A DNA stretch of 64,000 nucleotides from Octopus sinensis (GCF_006345805.1 NW_021832124.1:1-64000), one strand, 5' to 3'; numbered from the stretch's first letter, positions 1 through 64,000 are shown. The notes: generated by a model not told the origin, from the letters alone. Made by a program: numbers and translations.

Positions 1-3000
1 ACAATTCAACAGAATCCTCAAAAATCAAAGACTCCTCAATATTGTACAGTTGGGCGTTCTCAAACATGAGTACAACATCCTTAGAGAACTCCTCCAATGA
101 AGTATATTTCTTCAACTTGATTCGACTCTACAATACAACACACCCAACACCTTAATCCGCTTTATGTCCACTGGCTTTTTAATAATCTCGTAATAGTCAG
201 GCAACTCTCTCCTCGATGGCAATTCCAGGAAAGGATCAATCAATGCTCGGCCATCCCTTAACTATACTAAAACCATTACTCGTCATGATAGTCAATCAAA
301 AATGTCAACAAATCGTTCAAGAGCTGACCAATATCCCTCTGGGTTGGCTTGACTGCTCTCTTTGGTCTACTGGGCACATAATCCTCTGAGAAACTCGAAT
401 CCTCCTCCTCAACTTGTGCCCGTCTCCGTGAGAAAGAATGTTCCCAAATTGGCGAGTTCACTTTTTCATAAGACGAATGAACAAGCCAAAGGGGGAGTTC
501 ATCCTCGGTGATTACTCTTGAAGGAATATTGTCACGTTTGTCCATTTGTTCACGCTGGGAGTCCATCTGTGTGAACAACTCATATTCCTCGTTTGACCTC
601 ATTAGCATAGCATTGATGGCTTCATCGTCGTGGATAGAATCAGCGTCCTTAACCTCATCTCCGTCCTGATCCAATAAACTCTGCAAGAATTGCCTTCTTT
701 GATCGGATGTTGACTTTTGGTCAAACATTCCAGCACGAATGACCTTCTCGTCCATATTTAGTTTATTCTTTGCAGCAGAAAGAATTCTTTCCTCCACAGA
801 ATTAACAGTGACTAGACGAAGTACTGTGACTTGTCTGAGCTGCCCAATCCGATGTGCTCTGTCTTCGGCCTGCAGGTCTTGATGGGGATTCCAATCAGAG
901 TCAAATATTATCACTGTGTCCGCAGTTTGTAAGTTCAGTCCCAACCCACCAGCCCGAGTACTCAGAAGGAATATAAACGTGTCAAGTTGGGGGTCGTTGA
1001 ACTGAGACAAGAGGAACTCCCTGTCCTCAGCTTTGGTAGACCCGTCCAATCTGAGGTGAGAAAAATCCCTCATATTCAAATAATCCTCCAAAATATTCAT
1101 TAAAGATGTCATTTGACAAAAAACAAGACATTTTCGATTCACTGCTTTCAATTTGGGCAATATTCTGTCAAGGACCTCAAATTTTCCCGAAACACGGAAA
1201 AGAAGAGGCCCAGTGACCATATCATTGGACATTCCAAATTTCTGTGCCAACGACTTTTCAACCGACTCAAACATGAAAGGATGATTACATATCTTCCGTA
1301 ATTGCATAAGAGTATTAGAAAGTGACCTCCCAACAACTTTTGACTTTTCATCACATGTGAGGACTACTCCATTCTTCTGCATATGTGTATACATAATTCT
1401 CTGGAGTGGAGTGAGGGCACATTTGATTATATATTCCACTTTATCCGGCAACTGACATTCAACTTCCTTTTTTAGTCTTCGAAGGATAAATGGACGTAAA
1501 ATCGTGTGGAGTCGACGAATTACCAAAAGTGACTCTTCCTGGTTAAGTTCCACCCGCTCATTCATACTAGCAAATGGAGCACTAAACCACTGCTCGAACG
1601 TGGCACAGGATTTAAATATTGTCGGCTGAATAAAGTTTAAAAGAGCCCAGAGTTCAGGAAGACGGTTCTGCAGAGGAGTCCCCGTTAGAAGCAGTCGGTA
1701 GGGGACATGGAATTTGCTGGAAAGAATACTGGTCAGTTTACAGTGATGGTTCTTCATACGATGTCCTTCATCGATGACCAGATAAACCCACCTCATCTTC
1801 CTGTTAGTCAAAAAAGATACCTTCGAAAGGACATTTTTGTCTTTTATGATATAATCATATGTTGTAATGACCACATTTACATTTGTAGATCTCATTCTTA
1901 AGCCGACTTCCCTCCTCACTTGTGGGGTCCCTCGATATGCCACCACAGCCATCGAAGGTGCCCATCGACCAAACTCATTCACCCAATTGGACAAAGTCCT
2001 TCCAATCAGCACGACCACTTACGACAAGGGCACCACAACCAAATGGGGACCGTGAATTCTCTTATGTTCCAATAAATAGGCCAGAAGAGCAATAGTCTGA
2101 ATAGTCTTGCCCAAACCCATCTCATCTGCCAAAATACCGTTCAAATTGTTGTTATAAAGAGACACCATCCACTCCAGTCCAGCAATCTGATACAACTTCA
2201 AAGTGCCGCCTGTGAGGATTGTAGGCTGGACTTGAATCTTTTCTCGATTAAAATGAGCAATGGAATAACAGTCCTGTCCTTCCTCCCCCAATGACCGATC
2301 ACACATGTGGGACTGCAATAACTTGGCCATATTCCCTATATATTCGTCCGTTTGTTCCAACAAGTATTTCAATCGGGTGTCCTTCTTTTGATCTATCAAC
2401 TTTCGGTACCCCACTTCATCCTCTTCCTAAAAACGTGTTTAATTATTTATTTGCCATTAATCGACGCATTCTTTCCCGCCGAATTCGATCCTCCTCTTTC
2501 TTTTGCTCTCGTTCATTCGTCAGGTGGTGGTTTAACACGGCCTTGTTCACTTTGCCCAGTTTGGTTGCTCGAATTCGCATATTTTCACGGAATTGCCTTT
2601 GATGTTGCTGAATTCTCCCCAAAAATTCCTAAAAATCAGAATTTTTACATTTTAACTAAAAATTGTTGTCTTCTTAGTCTCTCGGATTCCATTTTTTCAT
2701 GTTTTTCCATTCTTTCTGTTATTCTGGAATCACGGAGGCTTTGTCTCTTGACTCGACGACCAAAGGCAGGTCCCTCAATTCGGCAGGACTCCTTCATCAC
2801 ACACAACACTTCTTCCCGCACGTGCTTTTGGAGATCCAGCAGGCCAATCGCCTTCAACTCGATCAAAGCCTTCATTTTATTGTCCTCACTAAGACTGTTC
2901 AAAACTCCCGCCAGACTTTCCGATCGATATTTTAATTGTTGTTTAATTCTGAAAAATCGATAAATTATATTACATATTTTCCCGCTCTTTTAATAATATG

Positions 3001-3338
3001 TTCATGTCTATTTTCTAGTGGTGATTATTTTTTAGGAATACAAGTGGGTTTATGATTCCTAAATCATCTAAGAGCTCAGAAGGGATTGGTAATCCACGTT
3101 TGATTAGTTGATATGTGCTTATTTGGGCTTTTATTTTGTTTAGTTGGGTAGCTGTGACCTGACAAGCAAGTTGTCTCATTTCGTTGGTTAGCTGGGGATT
3201 GGGTTCCGGTTCAAGGAAGAGGACTCCTTCTCGATCTAGGTGTTTTGGGTAATATGTTACATTTCTTGCGTCTGTTAGGTAGGAAGGGACTGGTGTTGGT
3301 ACTTTTTGGGCAATATCGGGCTGAGAAGTATAAATCAT
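1..3338 (-). CDS. SMARCA2/4: SWI/SNF ATPase Brahma/BRG1 homolog (QLQ, HSA, SNF2 ATPase, bromodomain); multi-exon, runs off the left edge
   Basis: QLQ ([16 protein letters not shown]), HSA ([24 protein letters not shown]), [48 protein letters not shown]. Bromodomain [23 protein letters not shown] at 1-260. Introns traced at 128-150, 1797-1820, 1999-2022, 2427-2454 (GC-AG) and 3015-3041. One junction near 255-281 does not splice in frame as written. Confidence 0.97.
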
Positions 3339-3588
3339 TCCAACCACAATGAACGTGTATTATTAAATAATATATGTTTATTTAATTATTTGAAATAATC
3401 ATTTAATAATTAAAAAAATTAATTTTTATTTATTGATCTTTTATAGTAAATATTCATTTTTATTCTATTAAAAAACATCAATTTAAATCTAATATAATGA
3501 AATAATAGTTTAATTAATTATATCATAAACTTATTTATTTAGAAACAATTTGTTAATAAATAATAAAATTTAATTGTTTTGAATTCTA

Positions 3589-6570
3589 ATGAGAAAACTA
3601 ATACGCCTTTCAGTAAGTTTACAAATATTTAAAAAAGGGTAAAAACGCGGACAAAAAACCAACACAAGACGAATTATCCACAAATAATGACCTCCGAGGA
3701 TTTGTCTGCCCTTCATGTTTTGAGAATTTTGATACTTGCGAAGAATTATCAGTTCACTTTTCAACCCATCAAGTCCTCAATATATATATATTAGAATGGA
3801 CAACAAGAATTGTTGACCGACGACAAAAATGTGATGCAACAACAACAAATTGATAGCCTTCAACTAATAAACAAACAGTTGGAAAAAGATAAATCCAACT
3901 TGGAACAAGAATGTCAAAAATTAGAGCAGAATCGGCACTTTTCAGAGAAAAGCACATCAAAAATTGAATTTTGTTGTTTAATGTATTATATTAGTAGATC
4001 AAAGCAGATTTGACACAATTAAACAAGAGCAGGCAGATTTGAGTGAATATTGCAGAGAGAAACTTGAGTTGATGAAAAAACATGCCAAATCAACTTGTAT
4101 TGAAGTTTCAAAAAGTCGGGTTAATAAATTGGCTCTAAACCTGCAAAAATATATCAAAAAATCACAAAAACTTGCAATTTCGTTAAGAAAAAACTTGACA
4201 ATAACACAAATACTATCAAAAAACTTGTTTTCTAATTCATTTATGTTTGTTAAATGGATTATTAAATGTTTTTTGTCAACAGTCTCCAATATTCAGAGTA
4301 TGACTACTATTTCCAGAAGGTGTCCTCAGTTTGGACTGATTTTTAGACTTTTTATAAAAAATGAGACACTTTTTGGTCAGATTGGACAACTTGAGACTCA
4401 AATTTCTTTTTTTGTTCAGTCGGCGGGGACGGATGAGACGTCTCGAGTCACGATCGACTACCTCAGGACAGAACAGGTCGGAAAGTCGTTTATTTTTGTT
4501 AGGAAAAACTTTTAAATAAAGTCGAGGCAGCCCGAATTATGAACATCGAACAAACCGCGGCTTTTGACGAAGCTATGAAATGCAAGGAACTGGAATACTC
4601 CTGTCAAGTTGAATAAAACGTGCTTTATTTACATAGATTGAAGATTTGACCAAACAAATCAGTTTTACCGAACAAGAAAATGCCAAGCTTGGCCAAAAAA
4701 TGTCGACATTTTGTGATCTTGAGCAAAAAATGAGTTTAATCCGAACTTTCCTTCCAAAACTCGCCACTTCGCTTCGTTCTTCCAAAAACACGCTTGATTC
4801 AATTATTCTGAGTTGTACAATCAACAGGAGAAAGTCGAAATTGTCTGGAGAGGCATTAAAAAGGACAGCAAGTTTAATTCGTGAAGAGATGACCACCACA
4901 AAACTATTAATATCGTCTCATTTCCAAATACAAGCGAGGAAATTGCCACATTTGCTCATTCTATACGTCAAATTGAACTTGCGAGGTCTGCGGAGTGGAA
5001 ATGGACTTGTCTTGGCCTCTTTAAATCAAGGCTTACGAGCATATCTTTAGCCTATTCGAATATTAAACAAGTTGCGGAGGCCAATCAGTGTTCAATGAGT
5101 CAAAATTTACAAGTTTTAAAGAATCTGATAATTGGGCACTCCCTTAGAGTGAATAAAGTGAAAATTGGGTCTTGGAATTTTTGGAAAGATGAAGTTATTG
5201 GCCTAAAAGGATTGGTTGATGAGACACGTGGCAGGCTGGTTTGCCATCGAGATGAGATTGATTCGATTCTTGTCAGTCTTCTTGTGCCAGTAATTAACTG
5301 TAATCGACGAATCCGGATATTAATGAATCAGACTGAATTGACAATGTCGAGAATCGAGACTTTTGCATCCCAAAAAACTCCAATTATTGAAAAAATGACG
5401 AATCTCGTGTTTTCCGTTCGTGCTCAATTAAGAACGTTGGACAAGCATTCTAATTTGCTACTTTTGTTGAAACAAATTGTCGAATCAATTGGCAAGTTTT
5501 ACGAGTGTCTCAGAATGATGGATTTGAGAATGATTCGAATTACACAAAAAAGTTTACAAAACTTTAAATTGACGCAACAAAAATTGATATTAAAATGTTC
5601 ATCACAGTCCAGTCAGATTAGGATTTGGGAAGCAAAAACCGAGAAGAATCGTCTCTTTCTAATAAATTTGATTGTCAATGCCGAAAGACTGCATTTTGGA
5701 TCAGTCGAACTGAAAAAACTGTGTTTGGAGTCAACTGACAGGGGAGAACACATTAAATGCTATTTGTTCGATGTTTTGAATCGTTTTAAATATTTAAATT
5801 CAGTTTTTAAGGTTGTAAATACTATTTTATAATACTTAGAACTAATTAACCAAGCCGACGCTGTCCATATATCTAGAAAACAGGAGATTGACTGTCTTTT
5901 AATACAAAATGCTGATTTACAGCAAAAAAATGACGAAAATTGCAATTCAATCACAAAATTAAACTTTGAGCTGACACAATCAACCAATTCACTCAAAATA
6001 AGCTTAGACAAACTACAAATTCAAACAAACGAGAAAGAAGGTTGTTGTGTGTTGACTGACTGGTTAGATCTGGAAAAGCAGTTGAGGACTCAATTAGAGT
6101 CGAATGACCTGCTAATGAAAGAGTAGTATTAATATAAGGAATCTCAGGTATCTCAAGATTGAAGAACGGGACGAAGAGACCAGAGAACAGTTGTTAGCAA
6201 TGAAACTCAAAAACGTTGATCTGACCACCGGAATCCGTGAATTGGCCTCAGAAAACTCGTCCCTTCAGGTACATGGAGTGACCAAAACATTTAGATAATC
6301 GCCAATCGAGTATCCAACACTCAGTGGCATTCGGATAAGGATTGTCGACTGTGTGCTAATTGTAAAATAGTCTTTTCTCTGACAGTAAGGAAGGTTAGAG
6401 GAGTATTTAATCGGTAGCATCATTGTCGTAGTTGTGGAGCCATATTCTGCGCTGCGTGTACTACAGGTAGACTTCAGTTGGCAGCTGCTTCGAAAAATCA
6501 ACGTGTTTGTGACCAATGTTATAACACCATCAAAAGTAAGAGGAATCCACAACCAGAGAATATTATTTGA
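3589..6570 (+). CDS. EEA1: EEA1-like early endosome tether (N-terminal C2H2 finger, long coiled coil, C-terminal FYVE)
   Basis: ATG 3589 with introns 3613-3637 and 3773-3794 gives GFVCPSCFENFDTCEELSVHFSTH. 3' exons give WHSDKDC..RKHHCRSCGAIFC..RVCDQC, stop TGA 6568-6570. Middle exons not fully resolved. Confidence 0.8.
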
Positions 6571-6687
6571 CATATTTTATTTTAACTTAATAATATTGGT
6601 TATTGAAATGAGTATTTTTGCCTTAATTGGCTATTAAAATAATATTAACCACATAGTCAATTTAGATTGAATACAATGGATTATATC

Positions 6688-6699
6688 TACCACGTGGTA
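6688..6699. promoter_or_regulatory. Palindrome TACCACGTGGTA with an E-box core, ~80 nt upstream of PTPMT1
   Basis: Perfect 12-nt palindrome in an AT-rich intergenic gap; function inferred from position only. Confidence 0.2.
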
Positions 6700-6780
6700 C
6701 CAAATCGAGTTTTAATTTGAATTATTTAAGATTTTTTGGTATTAATTAAAATAAAAAATTTAATTTATAGTGGAATTGTT

Positions 6781-7415
6781 ATGTTTATTTTAAGACAATC
6801 TTTAGCATATGTATCATTCCTCCCGACTTTACTATACAACAAATTACTCAAAAAACTTTCATTAACCACGTGGTACAGTGTAGTGGACGAATGTGTTATA
6901 TTAGGAGCCTTGCCTTCAAAAAAACTTATTGTTAATGAAGTAATTTTTAACGTAATAAAAAAGTTAATTCCTTCTTATAACATTCACGGAATTGTCTGCC
7001 TCTGTCAAGATTATGAGTTATACTTAACCAGTCCGAGTTCTAAAGTAATTCTTAAATATTTATTGACAGACCATTAAAAGTCTTGGAATAGAAAGATTGA
7101 GAGTCCCACATTTGACATGGGACCTTCGCCCTCAATGTCTGATTTGGAAAAATCAGTCGATTTTATCATGAATTATTTTGAGTCAAAAACTCGTGTCTAT
7201 GTGCACTGTAAGGCTGGAAAGTCGAGAAGTGCAACAGTTGTTTGTTGTTATCTTATGAAAGTATTTTTTGTGAGTTTTTTTAGCGTCTTGGGATGAGACC
7301 TGAAGAGGCAGTGGAGTTTTTGAAATCAAAACGACCCACAATTTATATTTCGAAGGATCAGATGAATTCATTGGAAAAATATTTTAGCAATCTTTCTGAT
7401 ATAAATAATTCTTAA
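6781..7415 (+). CDS. PTPMT1: Mitochondrial phosphatidylglycerophosphate phosphatase (dual-specificity phosphatase)
   Basis: FLPTLLYN, W-Y..VILGALP, catalytic VYVHCKAGKSRSAT; intron 7261-7283; stop TAA 7413-7415. Confidence 0.93.
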
Positions 7416-8498: not shown

Positions 8499-8939
8499 AA
8501 GTGATTTTGATTTTTTCTAATTTAATTTGTCTTTTTGCTGATCTTGAATTTTTTTCTAGATTTGAAGTTATTTGAATTTACTTGACAATTTTGTCTTTTT
8601 AAACTAAGTGAGTTTTTTAATCGATATTTGTTTTTTAAGATTTTCGATAAAAATCTGATTAGAATTTGATAAGAAAACTAATTATAAATTCATTTTATAT
8701 TTTATTTTCCACTCGAGGCGTAGGCATTAAATTGTCAACAGTGACTTTTCATGATCAGGAAAAATGTAAACAAACTCCAGCTAACAATGAAGGCCTACAG
8801 TTTCAAAATACAGGAAATCAATCATCAAAGTCTTAATGATGGTTTTATTAAAAAAATAAAAATTATTTAAAATAAATAAAAAATTTTTTGCATGGAACCA
8901 GATTTTGACCTTTCTTGTAATGAATATAATTATTGACCC

Positions 8940-13311: not shown

Positions 13312-13320
13312 CAATTTTAT

Positions 13321-14310: not shown

Positions 14311-15711
14311 ATGAATTCCTCCATTCTCGAATTACTGTCAAAAACCCACGGAATAGACGACGAGATTGAATACTACAAAATATTACACAACACTGAAACA
14401 GTCCCACATGGTTCCACTAATTCAAATATTTTATTAGAATTACTTGAAAAACGTGAAAAAACTAGCACCGTCCTCTCCTCGAACGATAAGTCCTTCGGTC
14501 CCCTTTTTGCGGCCATTTCCAAATTCAAAAGTGAAATAAATGGCAGCACGTGAGCTCATCAACCCATCAATTTTAGAGTCCCCAGCATAATTTTCAGCAG
14601 ATTACAGTCAGAATTTGATGTAACCATTTTGTGACTATTTTTAGACTGATTTCCCCAATTTGTTGTGCTTTGCCTTTGAGTTTGTCCAATTCAAGTTCGA
14701 TATTGGAAAATACGAGGAGGCCTACCTCCAATTGGAGTTACTTCATCCACTAGTAGATTCTTTGCACGTGTTTTAGATGCTTTATGTCGATTCTGGCCGG
14801 TTTGTGAAGGGTTTTTGGGTAAGTTGTGCTGTGCGGTTCTTTTGGGTAACTTCAGTCGGGCTGAGACCCACTTGGCTGAATTGAGGCAGGTTTTATCACA
14901 GGTTTGGGTTGTGGGATAAGGTTAGTCAAAAATCAGTCTTGTGAAGGCATTTACTGATCATTTGTGGCTGCTGAATTGGTCGTTGTTTGTTTATTTCCGT
15001 TCTGTTGAGTCACTCCCAGTTTTTTGTGAGCTGTTTTTTGAGAGCAGGTTGATGGAAGTGACTGATGATTAGTTTTTTGGATGGTATTGTGAGTCGGTCG
15101 CCTTATTTGGTTTGTTATTTGGCTGTGGCTGTTGTTGTGTCTCGAAATGACGACAATTTTGAACGTCTTTTGGAACTGATTGTTATTTTTGTGTTTTTGA
15201 GTATTAGAAGCAAATGGTGGACAAGGATTGTGCGTCCTTGTTTGTGCTTAGGTTGGTGGGGGATTTGGATTTGATTTCGATCGCAAGGGACCTCAAGGAC
15301 TGTCGGGAAGTTGATTTGTTTTTTAATAAATTTTCAGATCATAAAATTGGATTATTTCATGAGTAATTTTGCAGATTTGTTTTATAAATATTCTTGTCAG
15401 TTAATTTTGAAGAGAATGCTAAAAATAATGTCTTGTTTGTCGATAAAGTTTGTTTGACACAATGTTTATATATTTGTAGTAATTTTATGACTTTGTTTGA
15501 AATTGATGGAGTTGAATTGGACAGAATGGTTCAGGATTTGAACTCAGATATGAACATGAGAATTAAAGTCGACTATAAAAATGTTTTTTGGTTTTTTATT
15601 GATATTAAGGATTTGCTGTCTTCTACTGTTGTCGCGGAATTGGTTGATATTACCCTATATAAGAAATTGGATGCGGTTGTAGCCAAAATGCAGAAGATAG
15701 TTGTCGAATGA
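14311..15711 (+). CDS. EIF3E: Divergent translation initiation factor eIF3 subunit E (INT6)
   Basis: Spliced product gives FKFDIGKYEEA, F-W-G-K-L, WLLNWSLFVYF, PYLVCYLAVAV, NFEENAK, collinear with eIF3e. One 1-nt frame break at 14817-14819 and one unresolved junction near 15375-15400; true N-terminus uncertain. Confidence 0.85.
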
Positions 15712-21715: not shown

Positions 21716-21719
21716 GGAT

Positions 21720-42500: not shown

Positions 42501-45500
42501 TTATTCGAAGATACTTTGATTTGTTCCATGAAGAATAATCCGAATCCAGTTACCTTCGATGTTAGTTGCTTTGGTGTGAAGCCCGAACTTAAATTTAATA
42601 CAAAAATACTTCAGTTTGATAAAGTTTTGTTGCATCGGTATTTATATGTAAATTTTCCATTTTTAGTAAAGAATCGAGGTCCATCGGAATATATAACCCG
42701 ACTCAACTTCCCGTTGCATGGAGACTTGTAGGGGTAGAGAATCTTGGAGAAGATTTCTCTGTATTAAGAAACACTGGAATCATATTGCCATTTGAAGAAT
42801 TTTCTCTGCCTTTCTTTTTTCGGGCCACCAAACCTGTTGTGATTGCCAAAAAATATGTCAGATTTGAAGTCAGAACATTCTTTTTTAAAATTTAGATTAT
42901 GGATGCTGCCAACATTCTTGGAATAGTTGACAGTGAAATTATTAACATAGCTGTCGAGGCATATGATATAGCTTTGGATATAACATTTCCCAAAGGAGTA
43001 GACGGTGGCTTGGACTTTGGAATTTGCCACGTTGGAGAAGATGCTAAGCAAAATATTATGCTGAAAAATAAAGGGAAATATGAAATTGGATACAAGTGAC
43101 ATTATATTATTAGTTGTTTAGTTTTTCGTTTTTTGATGATCAAAATGGAAATAACTTCAAAAAATATTTTTCCGTATCCCCAAAATCAAATTCCCTTGGG
43201 ACTGGAGAAAGACCAAATCAAATTCATTTAAATTTTAAATCCGACAAAGAATTAGAAATTAAAAATATGTCTATTCTAAAATTTCAAGTTATCGACATGA
43301 ATGGAGCAAATAAAAGTAACGTCATCGCGAATATACCAGTCAGGGTTTCTGCAAAATCGGTTTATAGCAGGCACTCCTATTTTGTGTTAATTTTACAGGT
43401 TTAAAGTAGTTCCCAATCACGAAATTAATTTCGGCCATCTTTCGACATACAGTAAAAAATCAAGAACAATCCAAATTGAAAATACCGGTCATTATGAATT
43501 TAAATACTATTTTATCAAAGCAAGCGACAAAAAACAGTTTAAATAGAATCATAATTTCATAGGAAAAGTGATATGGCTCAAACAAACATCCAAACTAAGA
43601 TTTCTGTTAATTGCTTTACAATATCTCCTGCATGTGGTCTCATAATGCCGGGAAATAGTCAAATTGTTAACATTGAATGTGTGACTGAACAGCCTGTGAC
43701 AAGTATCGAAGTAAAAAAGTTATATAATAAATAATAGCATTTTTATATTGAAATTTCTGACAGAGACATGAAATTATATCCAAAAGGATTGCCATATAGG
43801 TTAATGAGCGAAACTGTTCTTCCGGAAATATGCACAGATATTGATTCTGTTTTTGAAGAACAGTTAATAGTAGAAGAGCCCCAAAAACATGATTTAAATC
43901 AAGTAAAAATATTTTCGTGTATTTTAAGCTCAACTTTAACGGGATATTTGTAAAAAATGAACAGAAATTAATTTTCCCATTCGCATCTGTCGGAGAGACA
44001 GTTCAATGCCAGCTAAAACTTACAAACATTTCTCAAGTAATATGAAAATATCAATTTTTTAGATTACAGTCGATGTTATTGCTGTCTTAAAAGCACAAGG
44101 AAAAAAAGTAGGCGAGTCTTTTAGTCTGGAAAATACAAAATTTCAGATTCCAATAAATAATTATTTAATGTTGCCAGTAAAATTTACGCCGACAAGTCTT
44201 CAGGTCAATTTTTTCTATAAGTTGTAGACCTATAACTCAACATTGGAATGTTACATTGACAACAATCCCGGAAATCCTAAATCAACCAAAAACTTGATTT
44301 TTTCTTATTTACTCGAAGGAGATGGAATTTTTCCAACAATTCAAATACTTGAACCAAAATTGAAAAACTTTAAAGGTCAACCAATCATTTTATTTGACAA
44401 ATGTCGAATACATAAAAAACAAGTCAAACATTTAAAAATTTTAAACAGCGGTGTTTTGCCTTCTAATATTACGATTACTCTCCGCGATCCAAATAAAATA
44501 TTTCAAATGGTACATAATTCTGATGAATTTGAATCACAAAGTTTTTTGAAATTATTTTATTTGTAGAAATATCCCAGGATATTATTAGAAAAAAATTAAA
44601 TATACAAGAGACATTGGAACTTTCAATAACTATCGAAGCCGACTTACCGAACAGCTATAAAGCTCAGATTTTGGTGAAAGTCGATAGAAATGAATATGAA
44701 GAGTCAGTTATTCCAATCCAAGCCGAAGTACATGACGACTCAGTCATTCTCAGTGGTCTCCAACTCACCAGTTCGCTGGTAAGTAGAAGCGATAGCTCAA
44801 CAACTGAAGAATTTCAAAGTTTTTCTGAAAATGAAATGCTTTTAGTTTCAACGTTAAATCACATTATTATTCCCGATGTTGTGTTAGGAAACATAGAGTC
44901 AGTGAACTTCAATATTGTAAACTGCAGTCAAGACACGTGTTATCGTTTTGTTTGGAATGAAGTTCAACACCTAAAATTTTCTCCCAAAGTAAAGTAAAAA
45001 ATCGATATTTGCGTTAGGTTGGTCATTTACATTCAGGATCTACTAAAAGTATTACAGTATTTTTCAAGTCTGGAAAACCTGTCCAACTTTCTGAACAGAT
45101 TGTTTTATGTAAACTCCAAAAAATAACTTTCAACGACGAAATAACCAACGTGGTTGACTGGGACAATCAGTTGAAAGTAGCCAAATGGGAAAAAATACCG
45201 AAATATAACGAAGAAAAGTTGTTTTATATAATAACTAAATCAGTGAACTTGTGGCGTATAAAAATACAAAAATTTATGAAAGCGTGGCTGAAATTGAATA
45301 TAATGAAGTCAACGAAACTGTCAGTCCAGTTGAATTGAAAGTCTCTGCCAGAGCAGATACGATTCGATATACTTTTGACAACATGAAATTAAGTTTCACT
45401 GATGTCCACGTTTTTGATTCGGAGCAAAAAGAGTAAATCAATTCCATTAACTTTTAGACTGATTTTAAATAACGATGGAATAATAAGTATAGACTATTTT

Positions 45501-48500
45501 TGGGAAGTAATTGAATTAAATGACAGGTTTATAATATTTTCATATTCTTAGTGAAATTGTTGACGAATACAAGACTGTTTGGATTTCCCCCGAGAGTGGT
45601 TCTATTTCTGGTGGTAAAAAACAAACATTCGTTGTCAATTTTTGTCCGTTGAAATTGCAAGAATATTCAGCCTTTTTAAAATTTAAGTAAAATTCTTTTT
45701 GAATTAATTCACATAGAATACCTAATTCAAATGATAAAAATACAAATATTTTATTTAAAGGGAATTCTATTTTCCCTAACGTTTATTTTGATTTCAACAA
45801 CGAAAAGTTATTGCCCTCACTCCAGCATATTTTTTCTCCTCTCCCTGCTTCAGATTTTCCGAACAAAGTTCCTTGTAAACCACATTATGTAAATGTTGCT
45901 ACAAATGCTGCAAATGACAAAACTATAAAGTTTTTCTAGAAAGTTTAAAAAATAGAAAATTTATTCTTTTTAATCCCGTCGACGAACGATTAAAGTTTAA
46001 ATGGGTTAATAAAGATGAAATTGATGTCAACAAAAACGTTAATTTTAACTGTCTGACACGGGAAGATTCTGTGGGGCCAACAAAACGATATGAAGTACAA
46101 TTACTTAGATATTGGTTAGATGGCATTCCAATTTGAGTGTAAAGAAGAAGGAGTCTTTGATTTTAATTGGGAATTGCACCTTTCGCCTCTTGATATTAAA
46201 ATCCCATTTATATTTATTGGTACATATAAAAATCCGCGAATAATGCTTTGTCGTTCTTCAGTTGATTTTGGCAAAACGATTGCTGGAAAGAAACTCACAG
46301 CAAAAATAAAAATAACGAACCTTGAAGATTTTCCACAAGAATTTATGATAGACAAGGCCTCCTGTTTCAGCAAAAGTTTTTTGTCATCATTAAATATTTC
46401 ACCAGAAAGCGGATTGATACTTCCAAACTCTAGGTTAAATTAATATTTCCTGATTAATTATTGTAGTAACGAGTTAGATGTGAGTTATTGTCATGATCAA
46501 GCCATAAACATGAACATAAATGCTCTGGTTCATGTAAAAAACAAGACAGCTCCACTTCGACTCAATGTAAAGGCTCAAATTTCAAAAATTGAATGTCTGA
46601 TGATCTTGGAAAATGAAGATAAACAAAGATTTACTCTAAAAGAAAACGAAATGAATTTATTTGAAATAGATCAAGTTTGGCTGTTTACTATTTTTAAGTT
46701 TTCAATTGGAAAAACGATAGTCTACACCTTTTATCTTACGAACAAAAGCAACTTTTTGATTGAATACAAATGGAATCCGAAAGATGAAGTTGAGAACGAG
46801 TGTTTCAAAATCTACCCTCCTTCCGGGACTATTGGAGCCTATGAAGAAACAACAAACCATTTACTTTTGAGGTCCACAGAAGTTGGTTCAGACAAAAAAA
46901 TAATGATCAACCTCACAGTAAAAATAAACAAAAAAACAATTTAGATCGTGAATGGGCCTTCATATAAACTTGGAATAATTTTAAAATCGAAAATTCCAGG
47001 AATTCACTTTTCATTTCTTTCCTATGACTTTGGTCTTTGCTATATCCATTCTTGTGGAAACACAATAAAAGACACCGAACTTTTACTTTACAACAATGAA
47101 AAGACGAATATTAGGTTTTTTTATTAAAATATAATTTCTCACAGTGTCCGTGTGTTACCAACTCACGACTCCAGTTTTGATGTTCAATTTGAATCAGAAT
47201 TGATTAATTCAGATCAGGAGGTCAAAGTACCTATTTACTTCCGTCCTAACAAATCTGGAAAATTCTCAGAATCTCTAATTTTCGAAATAAATGGCGTATA
47301 TAAACGAACAATCGAATTAGTTGGCAAGGCTGTCGATTTAAAAGTCAGTTTATGCCATATAAAAAACTTAATAGATAGAAGCCTTAAACTTGTGTGACAA
47401 AACTCTAAAGTTTGGAGCCATACAAGTCGGTCAAGTCAAAAAGAAAAATGTAATGTTACTTAATAAAACGTGCAAACCCGTAAAAATGAAACTGAGTTTG
47501 ATAACTTCGCGATCGACTGCGTTCCAGCGCGGAATTCTGGAGGTAAAACCATCGGAAGATATTGTAATGGATGCAAAGACAGGAAAAGTCAATGTATCTG
47601 TTCTCTTCTGTCCTAAAAACAGAGTTTCTGAGTTTGTTGACGAAGTATAAACATCTTTGCCCACAATTTAGGTGCTGGTGGAAGTAGAAAATATTGCTTT
47701 TGGAGTATTTTATGTGACAGGACGGGCTATTTCTTCGGAAGTTGTTCTCAATACTTACAATATTGCAATGGGTAAAATCACTCTTGGTAGTTTAATCGAA
47801 AAAAAATGTAAAATTATAAATAATGGAGATGTTGGTGTCAGGCATGTCTAAATAATGTAATATTAGATTTTTTTGGGAAAATAACAATTCTGAACTTGAA
47901 TTATCTCCAATCAACGGATTTATAAAACCAGGAGACACATCCCCTATCGATGTGATTCTACGACCCGCCGCGGTCAACGCCGACATGAGATTTGAGGTAA
48001 AATTACAAAAGTAACAGTTAGAATATAAAATGTCTCTTGAGTGATATGACTAGCATGAATTTGGTTGTTACTGGTTCCTGTGAAGCAGCAATCCCATTTA
48101 AAGATATTGAACTATTTGTGACCCCTGTTCGACAAATAGACAGGCGTCAAATACCCTTAATTAACCGAACCAACCAGCTTTGGAAGATTGAACCAAAAAT
48201 TGAAGGGAAATATTGGGTAGGAAGTGATCACATCATTGTCGAACCAAATCAGACAAAATTATATGATATTGTCTATCAACCACTGGCTATGACAACAGAT
48301 TCGAATCGTCACTATGTTTAACATATAATAGCAATAAATCATAGGGTTCTATATTTTTCCCATTACCCGATGGAACCGCTCTTTATTACATTCTCCAGGG
48401 GATTTCAGAACAGCCAAAACCTTCAGGTAAACTCACATTCGAAGCACTTTCAAAACTCGAGCTAAAAGAAAGTCTGAAAGTAGAAAATTGGCTTAATATT

Positions 48501-49742
48501 CCTCAATGGTATGATAATTTGTTTTATATTTAAAGTTTAAAAATCGCAGTTGTGCACTTACGACCAGAAAAAGTGGATCAAACCTTAAAAATTGGAGGGT
48601 CATCGCATATTAATGTCGGAGCACTAGAAACCACAAATTACGATTTTACAGTGTTTTCATATAAAGAAGGGACGTTTAATTTTAAAGTTGTCTAATTTCA
48701 AGTATTTTAGATTACGTTTACAAATGAAACCACCGGAGAGTATCTTTTTTACGAAATTACCCTTAAATGTACCAAAACTCATAAATTCGGTCCTATCAAC
48801 ATAATTTCGACTGTACGGAAAAATATTTCTGTCGCAATTGATGTGGAAAACCCCCTTAATTCACCAATTGCTCTCCAAGTGAGTTGTAATGTTACAGAAA
48901 TATTCCATCCCCCAATGCTTTCTATCGCAGCAAAATCAACGGTTTTTATTTTATTACTGATTTTAAAAGGCCTCTTTATCAATCGAGTATCAGCCTGTTA
49001 AAGTTACGGAAGGAAGCCCTGGAAAGTTGGAATTGTATAATTCTGAACTCGGGAATTTTATTTATGAACTTATTTTGACTGCGACTCCTCCAAATTTTGA
49101 AGAACCTATTCTTTTCTCTACGTATTTGGGAACCAGTAAAACACAAGTCGCAAAATTTTACAATCTGGCCAAACAAAAATGCGATTATACATTAAAAGTG
49201 TGATTTATAAGCCAATTTAGACTAATAATCCCGACTTTTTTGTCGAAAGAGTAGTCTCCACTGTACCAGGGGGAGCTGGTGGGAATTTAATTCCAATCGA
49301 TGTAACTTTCGAACCTTCAAAAATCGGTTCTATCGAAGGAATACTGACAGTTTCCTCAAACATTGGAGGGGAATATGAATTTCCATTAAAAGGAATGTCT
49401 CTAGAACCCAAACCTCAAGGTCCACTGATAGCAAAGGCTGGAATGACAATATATGTCCCGTTCAAGAATCCCTTTCATACTATTGCCAGTTTAAGTGTAC
49501 AAGTATATGATTACTTATAACAAACATAGGTTGACAATCATCAATTCTATGTAGCTAGACCAATAGAGACAGTTAAGCCTAGACGGGAAATTCGGATTGC
49601 TGTTGGATTTAGTGGAATTGATTTAACTGGAAAAGGAGGTGTTTCCGTAGGGAAACTTTCAATTATTTGCGCCAAGTCGCAAGCAGTTGACGAACGGATT
49701 CAGTGGGTTTATTATTTGAAGGGAATCGGAAACGATAAGTAG
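33600..49742 (+). CDS. HYDIN: Axonemal central-pair protein HYDIN, dozens of exons separated by tiny introns
   Basis: PKIVELLDMSET, LFQPFPSEIFFQ, LRNNDKVPRL, ITEREKFVIP..GARPILDFPD, repeated ASH/Ig-like motifs, terminal WVYYLKG; stop TAG 49740-49742. Start codon tentative. Confidence 0.97.
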
Positions 49743-50828: not shown

Positions 50829-50929
50829 TCTAATTTTTGTATTGTCGGTAGTCAAATAATTAAAAAAGGTATTATTGAACCAGACCGTATGAAATGGCCT
50901 TTTTATTTTATTGAACCAGAGAATCACCG

Positions 50930-55223: not shown

Positions 55224-55901
55224 ATGTCAAAAAAAGATTCAAATACCAAAAAAATCGACTCATTTCGTCTCGTGTTGCTTGGAAACGCCGCTGTTGGAAA
55301 GTCCAGTATTGTCTTACGGTTCGTAAATGGAATTTTTCAGGAATTCAACGAACCTACAATTGGAGGTTTATTTATATTATCAAATCCAGCCGCATTTATT
55401 ACTCAAAATGTAACATTTGACGATACAACTATTAAATATGAAATTTGGGACACTGCGGGACAGGAAAGATATCATTCTCTCACTCCGATGTATTACAGAG
55501 GGGCCCAGGCTGCCGTTGTCGTCTACGATCTTACAAACGAGGATTCATTTCACAAGGCTAAGAATTGGGTTTCGAATTTACGCTCGATGGCCGGAAGTAA
55601 CATTATTATTGCATTGGTCGGAAATAAAGAAGATTTAGCGTTAGAAAAACGTTCAGTCGAGTATGAGGTGATTTTTTGGTTTTTATTTGATTTCAGATTG
55701 CGGAGGAATATTCAAGGGCGCAGGGTCTTTTATTTTTTGAATCTTCTGCAAAAACCTCAAAAAATATAAACGAGATTTTTATTCAGATTGGTTGTGTCTA
55801 TATTTTAACTGATAGCCAAAAAACTGGTAAAGTCTCCCATTCTTTCTAACAAAGATGGAATAGATTTGAAAAATGAAAAACAGACTAAAAAATGTTGCTA
55901 A
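55224..55901 (+). CDS. RAB5: Rab5-family small GTPase
   Basis: [15 protein letters not shown] (after a 24-nt intron), [30 protein letters not shown]-terminal CC; three introns of 24-29 nt. Confidence 0.93.
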
Positions 55902-56710
55902 ATGACTCACATTTTTCATATATATAACTATTTTTTGGTTTTAGATTTTTTAACAATTTATATTAAACATGTTCAGTTAGGCATGGATTTGTGAAATTAG
56001 AAATTTGTTGGACAATATAAAATATATAATAATTGATCGTCAAGTCGATATTTATTATTTAAACTAGAAACAGGTCAATGTGTGATCATATATTCGATGT
56101 TACTTCAAGTCGTTACACTGATTGCATGAATCAACAAAAAAGCATAATTTTTAGATTGAATATACAAGCGGAATACATTTTGTATTGGAATGAAACATTT
56201 AATAACGTTTTTTGACTTTAAATGTGTTAAATAATATATTTCTGGCATTATAAACCTTTCTCGATTTAAGAGTTGATTAGATTACATGAAGTCATCGATT
56301 GCCGTTGAAAGCAATTTAAAACATTATTGCTAATGCACATAAAATCAATGTTTAATATTTACATAATAACCTCCTTTTTATTGTAAATCAACCCAACCCA
56401 ACTTGTACTTAAGGCTGTTCTGAATTATCTAATTCTAGGAAATTGATGACTAGTACAGTATAAGAAGGAGGATAATTGGTGATCGACCACAGGCATAAAT
56501 TTAATATCAGCCACCATTTCAAAAAATATAAAACGGTAGTTTTCAGTGTTAAATTGTAAACCCGTGTAACTTTTGAAGTTATTTATTTAAATTAAGTGAA
56601 TATCAAATTGTCTGTTTATTATTAATTTAATTATAAAATTGAATTTTTTTGAATTTCATAGCTTAATCTGCTGATAATTGTCAAAAATTTTTTACATGAG
56701 TGAAAAATCG

Positions 56711-58340
56711 ATGCCCCGAAATAATCTTACTGACTATTATTTTAATATTGAGAGGAATTTAAAATTTGATGAGTCGGTGGAACAACAGGCCCCACGTGCA
56801 ATAATCCACTCGCTTGCAAATGGTTAGAATTCAATTAATATTTAAATAGGTCTGGTTATTGAAGACAAGGAAATTCAAGGTCGATTTAAACTACTGCCTA
56901 TTACTCTTTTACCCTCCCCTTTCCCCTCAGAACTATACCAGCAAGGACTACAGCTGGGAATGGACTATAACATTGTTTACTCGAGAGTTGCCAATAATCA
57001 TCAATTTTTAAAAACCGCTCTATCAAAGTGAGGCTTGAATAATGATTTGTGTTTAGTCTTGTTGAAAAAGATTGTTTTTTTGCTCGTTTATGGAACATTT
57101 ATGAGCAGACCCGACAGACTCAAAAACAAGTATGTATACATATAAATTATAATTAGACAATTCAACTAAATATAAACCGATCTGACTACATGATTTCCTG
57201 CATCGAATCTCCAAAACTCACTCAAATTGAAATAAATATGATTTCGGTTAGTTTTGGAGGATTAATGAAACAATGTGTGGATACTCACAAGTAATTTTAA
57301 TAGTATATATACTTAGACTTGTTACCGACAAATTAGGCATTCCTCAGTCCTCAAAAAATATATCTCCCGGACTGAATATCGCAAAAGGCATCCTTGAGGC
57401 TCATAAAATGTACATTAAACAAAACAACTGCAAGTTTGTAAAATTTGCATAAAATACGAACTTAGGGCTGTTATACTGTTTGTTGTCACTGAAGTAAAGT
57501 GTAATCAGGTGGATCAGTACCTCGTAGAATTTGAACTTTCTCGTCTTTGTTCTCAACTCGAAGTAAAGCATGTCACTCTTAAGGAAATTTACTTTTCTGG
57601 ATCACTGGGTTCATCGTTTGAACTATTAATGTTATGAATCGTGATTGTTTGATTTGATAGTGATGGAAATGAAGTTTCAGTTGCATATTTTCGTACAGGA
57701 TATACGACAAGCGTAATGAACATGGAGGAGGTAGGTTGGAGGATTGAAATACGTTTTTTAGGAATGGGAGGGTCGACTTTTGATTGAAAAATCGAGATCA
57801 GTCAAATGTCCGTCTATAAACTACCAATTAGCTGGGACCAAGAGAATTCAACAATTTCTTTCTGATCGTTCAATTTTAGCCCAATTTACAAAAAATGAAT
57901 CCATGACTGGTCGTCTTTTGGCATCAATGGCCTATCAATTCAGTTCTGATCATCCAGACTATCATCAATTGATACACAAAGTCGAGGAAAGTCCACAAAA
58001 CTATGTCTTAAAGTCTCAGCTTGAAGGAGGTGGAAATAACATATTTGGACATGAAATTGTTAATAAACTAAAGTCCGGAGAGGATATTTCGACTTATACT
58101 TTTATGGAAAGAATAAACGGAGTTGCCAATCAGAATTTGATCTTGAGGGGTGCGGGGGAGTCTGTTAAGAGACAGGAAGTGTTGAGCGAATATTCATTTT
58201 TTGGTGTCATTATTACGGACGGCGACGTAGTTATGAGAAATGATTCGTTTGGTGATCTTGTTCGTTCGAAAGTGGCGACAGATAACGAGGGGGGTATTAC
58301 TAGTGGAATGGGTTGTTTGTCTTCCATGTATCTACTTTAA
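56711..58340 (+). CDS. GSS: Glutathione synthetase
   Basis: PITLLPSPFP, NRSDYM, QIEINMISVSFGG, VAYFRTGY, KCPSINYQLAGTKRIQQ, YVLKSQLEGGGNN, EGG; splices cleanly in frame. Confidence 0.95.
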
Positions 58341-60592: not shown

Positions 60593-63500
60593 ATGAAATT
60601 TTTCCGGAAAAAGAAAAAGATTAAACCTTCATCAACCCCTTATATTTCCTCCAAGACCAATACCATACAAAGTTTCGAAAGGATCAGAACAAGGGAAGTC
60701 GACTCCTTAATAGACATTGTTTTCAACAGCAATGACCCCTGTACCGTGGATTATGGCTTAGATCCGACGCTGCTCTTTGTGGAATATCTTCCTCCACTTC
60801 CTGTCAGACAAATCACTTTGATAGAAGAAAACGGAGAGTACGGTTTCTTCCTTAAAAAGAAAGTTCTCCCAGAAATCACGAATTACAGCCGAAAACAGGT
60901 ATTTTTAAAGATTTGAAGGCAGGCCATTTTTATCGACAGTTCTGACCAGTCTGCCATACTTGGAGACCGGTTAATCTCAGTGGAAAGGACTATCGTTGAT
61001 GAAATGTCGTGTGAGGAGGTGGCGGCTCACATCATTATGTGTGGAAAGCGAGTGATGTGCCAAATACAGCAATTGAGGGAATTCTCTGAAATCTACAAAT
61101 TCATTTTGGACTACGACCAAGTCAATTTATGGTCTAACTACACGGAAGACCGTAAAATCTCGGTAATTTACAAAAAAACCAAATTTAGACCCAACAAACC
61201 AACCATTGGCTTGTCCACCGCTACGGGTTTAGTGGTTGTGATACAAATCTGATCGAAGCTGAGGAAACAAGTGTTTTTGTCCCCCAATCAGAGATGAAGG
61301 CAATTACAGTCTCCACGGAAGCAGTTGAAAAGTCAAATCCACGTGATTTGGACTTTGTGGAGGATTGTTCGAATTTGTGGTACCTCAATGAGTGTGGACT
61401 AATCCACAACATCCGTTCTCGTTACCTCAATTCACTTTATAACACATTTATGGGGAGATCACTCATAATGGTCAATTCCTTCATGACTTCACTCAGTTTT
61501 TGTGATCGGGTAATGTCTTTGTGCTCAATAAGGATGTCGGAGATGTTCTATGGATTGATAAAGACAGACAGTCTTCCCCCACATTTGTTTTCTGTTGTCC
61601 AACGAGTTCACCATTCCATGCAATTCGAGAACAAGTCAGACCAAACTATTCTCTTTATGGGACACCGCGGATCCTCTAAATCAGAGGGATTCAAGAATTC
61701 TGTGATTCACCTTCTGAGGACTCCAAATAAACACCAACTTAACAAATTTACCAGTTTTTGTCATATTTTTTACATTTTAGTCGAAAAATGGAGTTGTCTA
61801 TATAATTTGCTTCACTTACTGACCTCCCTTGTTTCCCAGGGGTCCCTCACTGGACTTGTTCTGAGGACTAGTCTCCACTATGACTCGATTGGGTCACTTT
61901 TAGGAGGGTCACTCCTTCTGGAATTGTTCGATCCATTTATTATTTTCAATTCGAGTCAATTTAATATTGTCCGCTCTATGGTGGCTGGAATTGATTCGAT
62001 TGTTCGGTTTTTTTTAATTTTTCATAACATTTTTAGACGAAAATATTCGCTTCCTGAGGAGACTGGTATTCCAGTAAGTCCGTTCTGTCAGTTTTAGGAA
62101 AATAAACGATGGAATAAACTCACACAGGCGTTTTCCGAACTTGATTTTACTGAAAATGAACAAAACTCAATCACGGCAGTTCTCGCTGCAGTCTACCATT
62201 TGCACATTGCAATCAACAGCGACTTTTCTCTCGATTTTTTGAACAAGGTGGCTTCATGTTTTGAAACAAATACACAAGTCCTTATCGGCTTAGTCAGTCA
62301 GTTTGTTTTGTTGTTTTAACGTAGAAATAATAAACGGAATGTCCCAGAATCAGAGCTATGGAAGTCTCTACTGGCAGCTCTGTATCACAACCTTGTGGAG
62401 TCCGTGGTAAGTCTGATCAACAGGTGGGGTATCCGCGGTTATAAAAGGTCGATTTCACCTGTCGAGAATGTCTCCAGTTCTATCCACGTGCTCTACTCTC
62501 CTGGAATCAACACATTTGATGGGCCCGTCCAGAATCTTCATTCTTTATTCCTGGCTTATTTCCATGAGAAAATAAACCAAATTCACTACAATTTGGTCTT
62601 CAAGACACCTCTTGATGTATATGAAAAAGTATATACATATATATATATTTTTAGGAACAAATTGATGTGGACGGGTTCTATGTTCAGTCAACTGCTGAGG
62701 AGGCTGTGAGTACTTTCGAGAATAGAAGTAATTCAGAGGAAGGAGGTGGACAAAACGGGGAAAAGGGAATCCTTCAATTGTTAGATCAGAGTCTGAGAAA
62801 TAAAAATTCGGGAGAAGATTTAGTAAAGGATATTCTAAATATTAATAAATGTAATGATATTTTGATTTTGTAGTCAATCCTGTCATAAGGAGCGGATCTG
62901 ATTCTCAGTCCTTCATATTCCTCCATTCGAATGGGATGCTGCCAGTGGAGTATGACTGCTCCCAGTGGCCAAATCAAGTTGTAAGTCTTGCGTTATTCAT
63001 CAAAGTCAAGACTCGTTTAATAAATTCAAATATGTGAGAATATTAATTGATTTTTTAGAGATTTATTTAATAAGAATTTATTCAAAAATTTGTCTCTTTT
63101 GATGAATACTCCCGGATATAGACTGGAGAGGACAGTCGTAAGGATATTCATATTATTGTGCAGAATAATACGATCGGGGGCATTCTGTTGACGGATGTCT
63201 CGTTTGTTTACACTGTGTGCCCTGTCATTGAATTGGATACCCCTTGGATTGCAGGACATAACCTGGCCGTATCCACATCCTCTGTGTCTTCGGGGACTAG
63301 TTTAAATGAGTTATTCGACGTTGCATTTGTCAGATTGCAGTTAAGAGCAATGTTAGTACTACAAGTGACACGATTATTCCGTTATGGTACGATTGGTATA
63401 ATAATGGAAGGATATCCTGACTATGTGAGTGTAGGTGACTTTATTCAGTCATATTCCATCCTTTTGGGGATAGAGGGGACCAACATTGAGATCATCACTG

Positions 63501-64000
63501 GAATAATGGAGACAGGACATGTGGAGGCTCACGATTATGCAATCGGCATTGATCGGGTCTTTATGAAGGACGGTGTCCTTAGTCGACTAAATGAATTCCG
63601 TGATCGTCTAATAACGGATTATATGATATCATTTCAAAGCAAAGTTCGGTCATATATATCAAAAATGACATTTCGGAGAATGCAGGTGAAGTTGAGACAA
63701 TTTTTAAGGACAGAATGTGTTTTCTTGTGTGCAGACAATCCAACACAACCTGAGGCTTTATCTGGGACTTAAACAGTGGCGGTGGTGGCAGCTGTATGTC
63801 GGACTGCTTCCTTTGGCTTCCGTTTCCGGCATTGACGCTCCAATTCGAGCACTTAAAGAAAAATTGGAACGAACTGAGCTGATTCTCTCAGAGAAGAATT
63901 TTGTTGTTGAACAAATGAAAGAAAAAGTTGTAAATGTGTCATATTCCCCAGATAGAAGCACTCACTAAGGAAATGATGGACGATAAAATAAATTTGAGCG
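60593..64000 (+). CDS. MYO18A: Myosin XVIII (PDZ, degenerate motor, IQ/coiled-coil start); runs off the right edge
   Basis: PDZ (GDRLISV), WLVHRYGFS, NPRDLDFVEDCSNLWYLNEC, PPHLFSV, degenerate P-loop GHRGSSKS, EKWSCLY, WRWWQLY; tiny introns throughout. Confidence 0.92.

Follow-up and report, generated by a model that had tools for sequence, protein, structure and literature searches.

Strand asymmetry anchored to gene starts in the short-intron genes of a probable dicyemid sequence from the Octopus sinensis assembly

In almost all unicellular fungi the coding strand is biased toward C at the 5' end of genes and toward G at the 3' end, a pattern that McLean and Tirosh found to extend to four-fold degenerate (4-fold) sites and to amino-acid usage, and whose cause they left open (PMC3315797). 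An excess of C over G around the transcription start site (TSS) has been described in Arabidopsis, rice and some fungi, with highly expressed plant genes showing it more strongly (Fujimori et al. 2005; PMC555766); a C bias at invertebrate start sites is among the work cited in PMC3315797. Animal introns have a transcription bias of their own, given in PMC5786239 and work cited there as an excess of G+T in mammals and of C+T in Drosophila; the Drosophila skew amounts to ~1-4% and depends on germline expression (PMC5786239). The subject of this analysis is a strand asymmetry in the genes of a 64,000-nucleotide stretch of DNA filed under Octopus sinensis (GCF_006345805.1 NW_021832124.1:1-64000; the whole stretch is referred to here as the window), which is probably dicyemid DNA. 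The original prediction, made from the sequence, was that every gene of the window is rich in C and A at its 5' end and in G and T at its 3' end, introns included, and that breaks in the spacers, replication starting in mid-gene or a transcription-coupled process might be responsible.

The gene set consists of 15 curated cellular genes, with transposon remnants left out; the gene models come from a Viterbi model trained on the window, which combines a codon table and phase-aware GT..AG introns with a model of lengths and splice sites. GC skew on the sense strand (positive where G exceeds C) is -0.09 in the first 300 nucleotides (nt) and +0.16 in the last 300 nt, and changes in that direction in 12 of the 15 genes (Wilcoxon p=0.0015). 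AT skew changes in the opposite direction, the start of the gene being richer in A in 12 of 15 (p=0.018). When the genes are pooled by distance from the ATG, GC skew is -0.12, -0.11 and -0.05 in the bins covering 0-300 nt, and +0.1 to +0.3 past 400 nt. G excess in the gene bodies is accompanied by T excess, and GC and AT skew are anticorrelated across genes (rho -0.57). Thus, a C/A-rich start and a G/T-rich end are a trend of this gene set, in GC and AT skew alike, but they are not a general rule: only eight of the 15 genes have a C-to-G change point at p<0.05 in a within-gene permutation test, and the 5' C bias is missing in about a third of them, so that the "every gene" of the original prediction cannot be retained. 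Its companion statement, that on the plus strand the left end of a gene is C/A-rich and the right end G/T-rich whatever the orientation, is arithmetically implied and carries no extra information, because a sense-strand pattern of 5' C and 3' G is its own reverse complement.

Which sites carry the shift? Pooled intron cores go from a GC skew of -0.29 at 0-150 nt from the ATG to +0.13 at 300-600 nt and +0.27 to +0.30 at 600-2000 nt. Four-fold sites stand at -0.36 and -0.30 within the first 300 nt and at ~0 further down; codon position 3 moves from -0.19 near the ATG to ~+0.15 downstream, position 2 from -0.39 to -0.10, and position 1 from +0.05 to +0.22. The size of the shift thus ranks introns ahead of 4-fold sites and position 3, these ahead of position 2, and position 2 ahead of position 1. 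Since the shift is greatest at the least constrained sites, neither codon usage nor protein composition is its cause, as the original prediction had also argued for codon usage. Gene by gene, the skew of position 3 rises from the first 300 nt to the rest in 11 of 14 genes (p=0.007). The encoded proteins follow suit: P+H+Q+T stand to G+V+W+C as 304:191 within the first 130 residues, against 635:607 beyond them (p=1e-4).

The intron evidence is unevenly distributed. A within-gene permutation of introns gives p=0.0006, but the per-gene contrast of early and late introns, which can be drawn for 10 genes, has p=0.25, with four genes reversed, and is carried by SPT5, SMARCA and EIF3E, the very genes that had been quoted as examples. 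The quoted counts for six introns are all exact on the sense strand: among early introns, SMARCA 3015-3041 has 6 C and 2 G and EIF3E 14550-14576 has 7 C; among late ones, SMARCA 128-150 and EIF3E 14902-14925 have no C at all, with 10 G and 11 G respectively, and glutathione synthetase (GSS) 57731-57761 has 10 G and 1 C. The claim that introns share in the skew therefore holds for pooled intron cores and mainly for three genes; it does not hold for the 79 introns of HYDIN, in which G-C shows no trend with position (rho 0.01).

The asymmetry is seen most clearly in these three genes, at what will be called neutral-ish sites (codon position 3 together with intron cores). Profiles at 200-nt resolution place SMARCA, SPT5 and EIF3E at -0.5 to -0.7 over the first 400 nt and at +0.1 to +0.7 thereafter, the positive skew lasting to the end of the gene or of the window. 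Pooled, their 5' zones have G 39 / C 138 and A 182 / T 142 (skew -0.56), and their bodies G 716 / C 356 and A 614 / T 887; zone and body differ with Fisher p=4e-29 for G/C and 7e-7 for A/T. The step lies ~400 nt from the ATG in genes of 1.4 kb (EIF3E), 2.9 kb (SPT5) and more than 3.3 kb (SMARCA), and the sign of the body skew tracks the sense strand in plus-strand and minus-strand genes alike. Intron cores in the bodies of the three genes have a GC skew of +0.51 to +0.62, with T in excess of A. In SPT5, C-rich introns lie in the 5' zone at 30550-30582, 30440-30470 (11 C, 2 G) and 30263-30288; the cores of introns 1-3 together have G 0 / C 24, and those of the later 12 introns G 75 / C 21. The last 300 nt of SPT5 are not G-rich, which can be attributed to the proline-rich C-terminal repeats that they encode. 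The asymmetry is not confined to these genes: with the three of them and HYDIN set aside, the remaining 11 still have a 5' zone at -0.05 and a body at +0.14 (p=3e-4).

The pattern is one of a short 5' zone followed by a plateau throughout the body, and not one of two mirrored ends, as had been predicted. This follows from the shape of the step and plateau, from the absence of any added rise of G near the stop codon when introns are counted back from it, and from the lack of skew upstream. Downstream of the stop codon, skew falls to +0.03 to +0.13. Pooled over the 500 nt upstream of the ATGs there is no skew (-0.03 to +0.08), nor is there any in the 400 nt upstream of the four clearest genes (G 197 / C 168), so the reset in the spacers that had been foreseen is borne out. 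In all clear cases the short C/A zone is at the transcriptional 5' end. (A technical note: among genes with a significant change point at neutral-ish sites, its position at one stage seemed to rise with gene length, as for a flip in mid-gene; for the three clearest genes this was rejected because the 200-nt profiles put the step at a fixed distance of ~400 nt. No relation to gene length is seen for the minimum of cumulative G-C over all sites (rho 0.24, p=0.40). Scanning all sites for skew jumps in a model-free way proved insensitive, because coding constraint masks the steps in SPT5 and EIF3E.)

Other genes of the window share in the pattern to different degrees (Table 1). Flips that had been noted by eye are found in the PTPMT1-like gene and, more weakly, in the RAB5-like gene; the gene called YAP-like has the C-rich start only, and the OSTM1-like gene and the one called RNASEH2B, a name that is not confirmed, do not have the flip. 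A flip had also been seen at the two ends of HYDIN, which is not confirmed: its end windows are only marginal (8th percentile and top 6%), and G and C are about equal in every 1-kb bin. The genes without the pattern are the coiled-coil gene, the OSTM1-like gene (7604-8498), an unnamed gene (18934-19712), "RNASEH2B" (50241-51044) and an acidic gene on the minus strand (51773-52523), with change-point p values of 0.11-0.72.

Table 1. Genes, gene parts and spacers referred to in the text. Counts for 5' zones and gene bodies are from neutral-ish sites; L001 is contig VCDQ01001570.1.
Feature	Position	Strand	Character	Counts, skew, change point
SMARCA-like gene body, 3' end cut by window edge	1..2938	-	G/T-rich plateau	G 305 / C 161, A 263 / T 324; bins +0.1 to +0.6 throughout
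SMARCA-like SNF2 ATPase, 5' zone (first 400 nt, ATG at 3338; N-terminal region)	2939..3338	-	C/A-rich	G 11 / C 35, A 72 / T 42; 200-nt bins -0.5, -0.6
AT-rich spacer between divergent genes	3339..3833	.	no strand skew; other such spacers 30592-31181, 33300-33656	
Coiled-coil gene	3834..6560	+	pattern not shown	
PTPMT1-like dual-specificity phosphatase	6700..7415	+	DSPc domain; C-to-G switch near nt 382 (~7082)	p=0.001; G/C 17/29 before, 29/9 after
EIF3E 5' zone (first 400 nt)	14311..14710	+	C-rich; eIF3e by PDB sequence search, E=1e-11	G 15 / C 49; bins -0.6, -0.5
EIF3E gene body	14711..15711	+	strongly G/T-rich	G 133 / C 44, A 83 / T 215
SPT5 gene body	27678..30191	-	G/T-rich plateau	G 278 / C 151, A 268 / T 348
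SPT5 5' zone (first 400 nt, ATG at 30591)	30192..30591	-	C-rich; identity by homology	G 13 / C 54
Gene called YAP-like (name not confirmed; no Pfam match)	31182..32006	+	C-rich start, no G-rich tail	first 300 nt -0.29, last 300 nt -0.02; change point at 311 nt, p=0.056
HYDIN (~80 introns, 16 kb)	33657..49742	+	HYDIN domains; no body skew, internal negative control	
RAB5-like GTPase	55224..55901	+	Ras family domain; weaker C-to-G switch near nt 329	p=0.05; G/C 17/25 before, 28/14 after
Glutathione synthetase (GSS)	56696..58340	+	Pfam GSH synthase; start not C-rich, last ~750 nt G-rich	change point at 896 nt, p=0.046; G/C 52/51 then 61/29; last 300 nt +0.41
Large unnamed gene	60593..63772	+	weak C bias for ~2 kb, then G bias	change point at 2085 nt, p=0.0045; G/C 142/174 then 97/57
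WD-repeat gene	L001 20642-21618	+	same C-to-G step as window genes	

How far can the gene models be relied on? Under a composition-neutral gene model the start codons are the same in 12 of the 15 genes; the start of 18934-19712 moves 93 nt upstream, and no model covers the ATG of PTPMT1 or of RNASEH2B. The junctions of SPT5 introns 2 and 3 are backed by an unbroken alignment to scallop SPT5 (from residue 14, 50% identity). Judged by this alignment and by start codons that are mostly stable, the introns carrying the skew are real. Pfam identifies SNF2/SMARCA (with SNF2 and helicase domains), the PTPMT1-like phosphatase, OSTM1 (weakly), HYDIN, RAB and glutathione synthetase. One SPT5 intron (~30077-30137, minus strand), just downstream of the C-to-G step, is nearly pure A+T and, at 61 nt, has twice the usual length.

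To what organism does the window belong? It is 34% G+C and uses standard stop codons; its genes are tightly packed, with spacers of 200-600 nt, and the coding sequence is broken every 150-200 nt by an intron, mostly of 20-34 nt (mode 26-27 nt) with GT..AG ends. Among animals, introns as short as these have been reported only from dicyemids and myxozoans (PMC13644364); the median dicyemid intron is 27 bp (PMC6543705), and one dicyemid, Dicyema japonicum, inhabits the kidney of O. sinensis (PMC6736024). The reverse transcriptase of a long interspersed nuclear element (LINE; 25287-26845) is 91% and 100% identical, over the matched stretches, to two proteins annotated as Octopus sinensis, and copies of the element with 95-98% DNA identity lie on two contigs of GCA_006345805.1, L001 and L002 (VCDQ01009472.1). 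The one confirmed intron of the WD-repeat gene on L001 measures 54 nt and, with the gene models on the two contigs, suggests a short-intron style like that of the window. The window's SPT5, at most 43% identical to any database protein (from molluscs, arthropods and others), is therefore not an octopus gene; no dicyemid relatives were among the matches of the protein-database search with SPT5. From the short introns, the LINE copies shared with O. sinensis contigs, the divergent SPT5 and the dicyemid host being O. sinensis, we conclude that the window is in all probability dicyemid DNA of the kind co-assembled in the Octopus sinensis genome record.

The analysis covers 64 kb of this genome and two loci (48 kb) rich in transposable elements. 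A protein search aimed at further contigs, with twelve transposon proteins joined as a single query, had no match. Most gene models on L001 and L002 are fragments or chimeras, and the only usable gene is the WD-repeat gene on L001. Along its coding sequence the counts switch, with G 76 / C 152 in 20760-21200 and G 105 / C 26 in 21200-21480. The skew pattern is real and statistically solid in the window, and is seen once more on another contig.

In most respects this is a pattern of a known kind. As in the fungi, the coding strand favours C where genes begin and G at their end or along most of their length; 4-fold sites are affected and amino-acid usage differs between the ends; strength depends on the gene, with many genes but not all involved; and mutational as well as adaptive explanations have been proposed. 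The window differs in coming from an animal whose dense introns of 20-34 nt also carry the pattern, in an AT skew that flips and has a negative correlation with GC skew (in fungi AT skew is positive and uniform, and the correlation is positive), in a sharp step at ~400 nt in its clearest genes where the fungi have a gradient, and in having no C bias upstream of the ATG, where that of fungi is strongest, in the promoter and 5' untranslated region (UTR). The fungal skew reaches into the promoter and 5' UTR and into the 3' UTR; skew here is absent upstream and only +0.03 to +0.13 after the stop codon. With the plant TSS skew the window shares a C excess on the sense strand at gene starts, for which a transcription-linked origin has been proposed in plants. 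The plant skew, however, has its peak at the start site itself, where it averages ~0.2 in 100-bp windows, and drops downstream; the zone in the window, whose distances are reckoned from the ATG and not from the TSS, is the first ~400 nt, reaches -0.5 to -0.7 at neutral-ish sites, and is absent 100-500 nt upstream.

With the transcription bias of animal introns the window shares a coding-strand intron skew that is gene-specific, has the mammalian sign in the body (G>C, T>A), and seems to be lacking where germ-line transcription is unlikely. At +0.5 to +0.6, the intron cores in the bodies of the strong genes exceed the 1-4% of Drosophila about ten times, and the inverted 5' zone lies outside the classical description of that bias. 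The original prediction had allowed that part of the 5' C skew might be ordinary, which the plant and fungal precedents confirm (PMC555766), and had held the G-rich 3' side to be the unusual part. The latter does not stand, because the fungal pattern of 5' C and 3' G and the plant and fungal start skew are already published: a G-rich 3' side is on record for unicellular fungi (PMC3315797), and the G+T excess of mammalian introns is treated as classical in PMC5786239. The skew of the window belongs to the known kind of transcription-linked skew, at an unusual strength (local skews of 0.5-0.7). Three dicyemid genome papers do not use the word "skew", and a full-text search on dicyemids and skew brought up no paper that, judged by title or abstract, deals with skew of nuclear genes.

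The explanation that we favour, with a probability that we put at roughly 0.55, is a compositional strand asymmetry anchored to transcription, with two regimes. Over the first ~400 nt, counted from about the start codon, the sense strand would be made C-rich and slightly A-rich, and from there to the end of the gene G-rich and T-rich, by a bias acting on the DNA or the primary transcript and not on the protein, amino-acid usage being dragged along. The most likely cause would be mutation and repair that treat the two strands unequally, depending on the phase that RNA polymerase II is in. Along the body, C and A would be lost (C to T, A to G) from the non-template strand, which is the exposed one, as happens in mammalian introns; close to the start this process would run with inverted polarity, making the first ~400 nt resemble the complement of the body. 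The strength of the skew would be set by the level at which a gene is transcribed in the germ line, which would account for the extreme values of SMARCA, SPT5 and EIF3E and for the lack of skew in HYDIN, a cilium gene. Dependence on germ-line expression fits the strong skew of housekeeping genes, the flatness of HYDIN and the correlation of 5' skew with G+C content at codon position 3 (GC3; rho -0.62). The transcription-coupled option of the original prediction is thus the one favoured, by the position of the C/A zone at the transcriptional 5' end, by a strength specific to the gene and by the greatest shift being at the least constrained sites. Tentatively, there may be a single strand-asymmetric process whose polarity is inverted in the first ~400 nt of dicyemid genes with the template strand exposed there, for instance by pervasive promoter-proximal antisense transcription or by antisense R-loops.

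A number of points weigh against the transcription-anchored explanation. The link to transcription level is indirect, and GC3 is not a validated proxy for expression here. Composition alone cannot separate a mutation bias from selection on DNA or nascent RNA. Inversion of polarity in the first ~400 nt is without an established mechanism, and the C bias stops short of the region upstream of the ATG, unlike that of fungi and plants. The 5' zone is missing in the coiled-coil gene, GSS, the OSTM1-like gene and 18934-19712, and the late switch (~2 kb) of the large gene at 60593..63772 misfits a step at 400 nt. The sample is 15 window genes and one gene on another contig.

Might the sequence of the nascent RNA or of the DNA be selected instead? 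In one version of this explanation a G-poor start keeps the 5' end of the transcript unstructured and disfavours sense R-loops near the promoter, and, in a tightly packed genome, a body and 3' end rich in G and poor in C favour pausing and termination assisted by R-loops; human genes show a link between G skew at their ends, R-loops and termination. Another version appeals to the avoidance of C in transcripts, an adaptive idea raised for fungi. That the pre-mRNA carries the pattern in its introns as well, that spacers are as tight as 200-600 nt, and that an adaptive alternative is discussed for the fungal pattern (PMC3315797) all speak for selection. Yet HYDIN and several other genes lack the pattern although they too are expressed and spliced, G-richness forms a plateau along the entire body rather than marking terminators, skew is down to +0.03 to +0.13 directly past the stop codon, and the largest shift is at the least constrained sites, as a mutational origin predicts. 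Selection accordingly seems to us unlikely, although a serious contender. A purely coincidental origin, in which the N- and C-termini of proteins merely differ in amino acids and a few introns have been cherry-picked, can draw on the facts that the intron signal rests mainly on three genes, the examples of the original prediction itself, and that codon positions 1 and 2 shift too. It is contradicted already by the site classes, intron cores and 4-fold sites shifting more than positions 1 and 2, and it leaves unaccounted for the permutation result for introns (p=0.0006), the Fisher results (p=4e-29 for the three strong genes and 3e-4 for the remaining eleven) and the recurrence of the step on an independent contig; we regard it as highly improbable.

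The two DNA-level processes that had been put forward beside transcription fare no better. If a replication origin lay near each step, forks moving leftward and rightward would leave C/A-rich and G/T-rich arms on the plus strand, and the step does have the shape and the four-base signature (amino to keto) of the skew jumps at origins in bacterial chromosomes and human skew domains, which likewise switch abruptly from C/A-rich to G/T-rich on one strand; as the pattern is its own reverse complement, sign alone does not discriminate. The arms at origins, however, extend over tens of kilobases or more, and those of the window over hundreds of bases: the C-rich arm is only ~400 nt long and ends at the ATG, with G 197 / C 168 in the next 400 nt, and neighbouring genes do not continue it. 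The YAP-like gene, which lies just upstream of the SPT5 promoter (rightward on the plus strand), is C-rich, whereas an arm that continued into it would have to be G-rich. Replicons of 1-3 kb would be implied, strength varies gene by gene, the 16-kb HYDIN is flat, and a switch that lies ~400 nt from the ATG whether the gene measures 1.4 kb or more than 3.3 kb is not a mid-gene one; origins near the steps are very unlikely indeed. Less probable still is that the AT-rich spacers suffer double-strand breaks repeatedly, or are sites of programmed fragmentation, with loss of cytosine on resected 3' overhangs at both ends of each gene-sized unit. The signs predicted for the plus strand, C/A-rich on the left and G/T-rich on the right, match, and dicyemids have been reported to rearrange their genome and to form extrachromosomal circles (Noto et al. 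2003, as cited in PMC6543705). But the circles on record measure 600-800 bp and consist of non-coding or mitochondrial DNA rather than units of nuclear genes (PMC6543705); the sequence nearest the supposed breaks is unskewed, when it should be the most skewed; the zones are unequal (~400 nt as against up to 2.9 kb or more), the short one always at the transcriptional 5' end; and HYDIN and other units lack the pattern. Telomere-like repeats are not in excess (4 found, 3.15 expected) and are absent from the spacers, which share no motif above shuffled sequence and have no repeats or common k-mers above chance; the telomere repeats or breakage signals at borders that mark fragmentation of the spirotrich-ciliate style are not seen.

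Some further features of this DNA may be recorded. The LINE belongs to a young family with reverse transcriptase, its copies lying at 24777-27009 (+) in the window, 9752-12178 on L001 and 2751-5160 on L002, and the family fits the LINE-rich genome, 49% repeats, reported for Dicyema japonicum. The published assembly of that species comes with RNA-seq-supported models of ~5,000 genes and a reported heterozygosity of 1.24% (PMC6736024). More remnants of reverse-transcriptase transposons are found at 17024-18321 (-), 20618-22221 and 53281-54663 (+); 8500-14300 and 19900-24000 are long stretches with only short, low-scoring reading frames and look like decayed repeats or pseudogenes. On L002 the LINE copy adjoins a tandem satellite (5262-6974; 18 copies of a 95-bp unit, 92% matching) that falls inside a range publicly annotated as a galactokinase-like gene. 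A transfer RNA scan and an Rfam scan at the gathering score of the whole 64 kb found no transfer RNA gene and no Rfam family.

Annotation of such DNA is not straightforward. On L001, a gene model trained on gene bodies put the start of the WD-repeat gene ~500 nt too late because its first exon is C-rich; gene finders trained on G/T-rich bodies may in the same way truncate C-rich 5' ends elsewhere in this genome. The public annotation of this 29-kb locus has two genes only. A stop-free antisense frame of 212 codons (20875-21549, minus strand), left by the skewed coding sequence, was called as a gene by the composition-neutral model, and the skew, being its own reverse complement, is no help in choosing the strand there. 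The host assembly GCA_006345805.1 carries parasite contigs, one of them of 388 kb, whose proteins are labelled octopus: the presence of parasite DNA inside a host genome assembly is also a matter of data quality.

For about twenty years plants, fungi and invertebrates have posed the question of why genes start C-rich and why the opposite skew follows downstream. Dense short introns provide closely spaced, near-neutral markers, with which the change is resolved as a sharp step ~400 nt from the ATG. If a single process with inverted polarity at gene starts is indeed at work, no stronger transcription-linked nuclear skew would be known from any animal; it would be so sharp that it marks where genes start and which of them are expressed in the germ line, and so strong that it reshapes proteins over their N-terminal ~130 residues. 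And if the pattern holds genome-wide, the dicyemid would offer a natural read-out of where the regime of transcription-linked mutation or repair changes, and a clear case of composition bias driving protein sequence.

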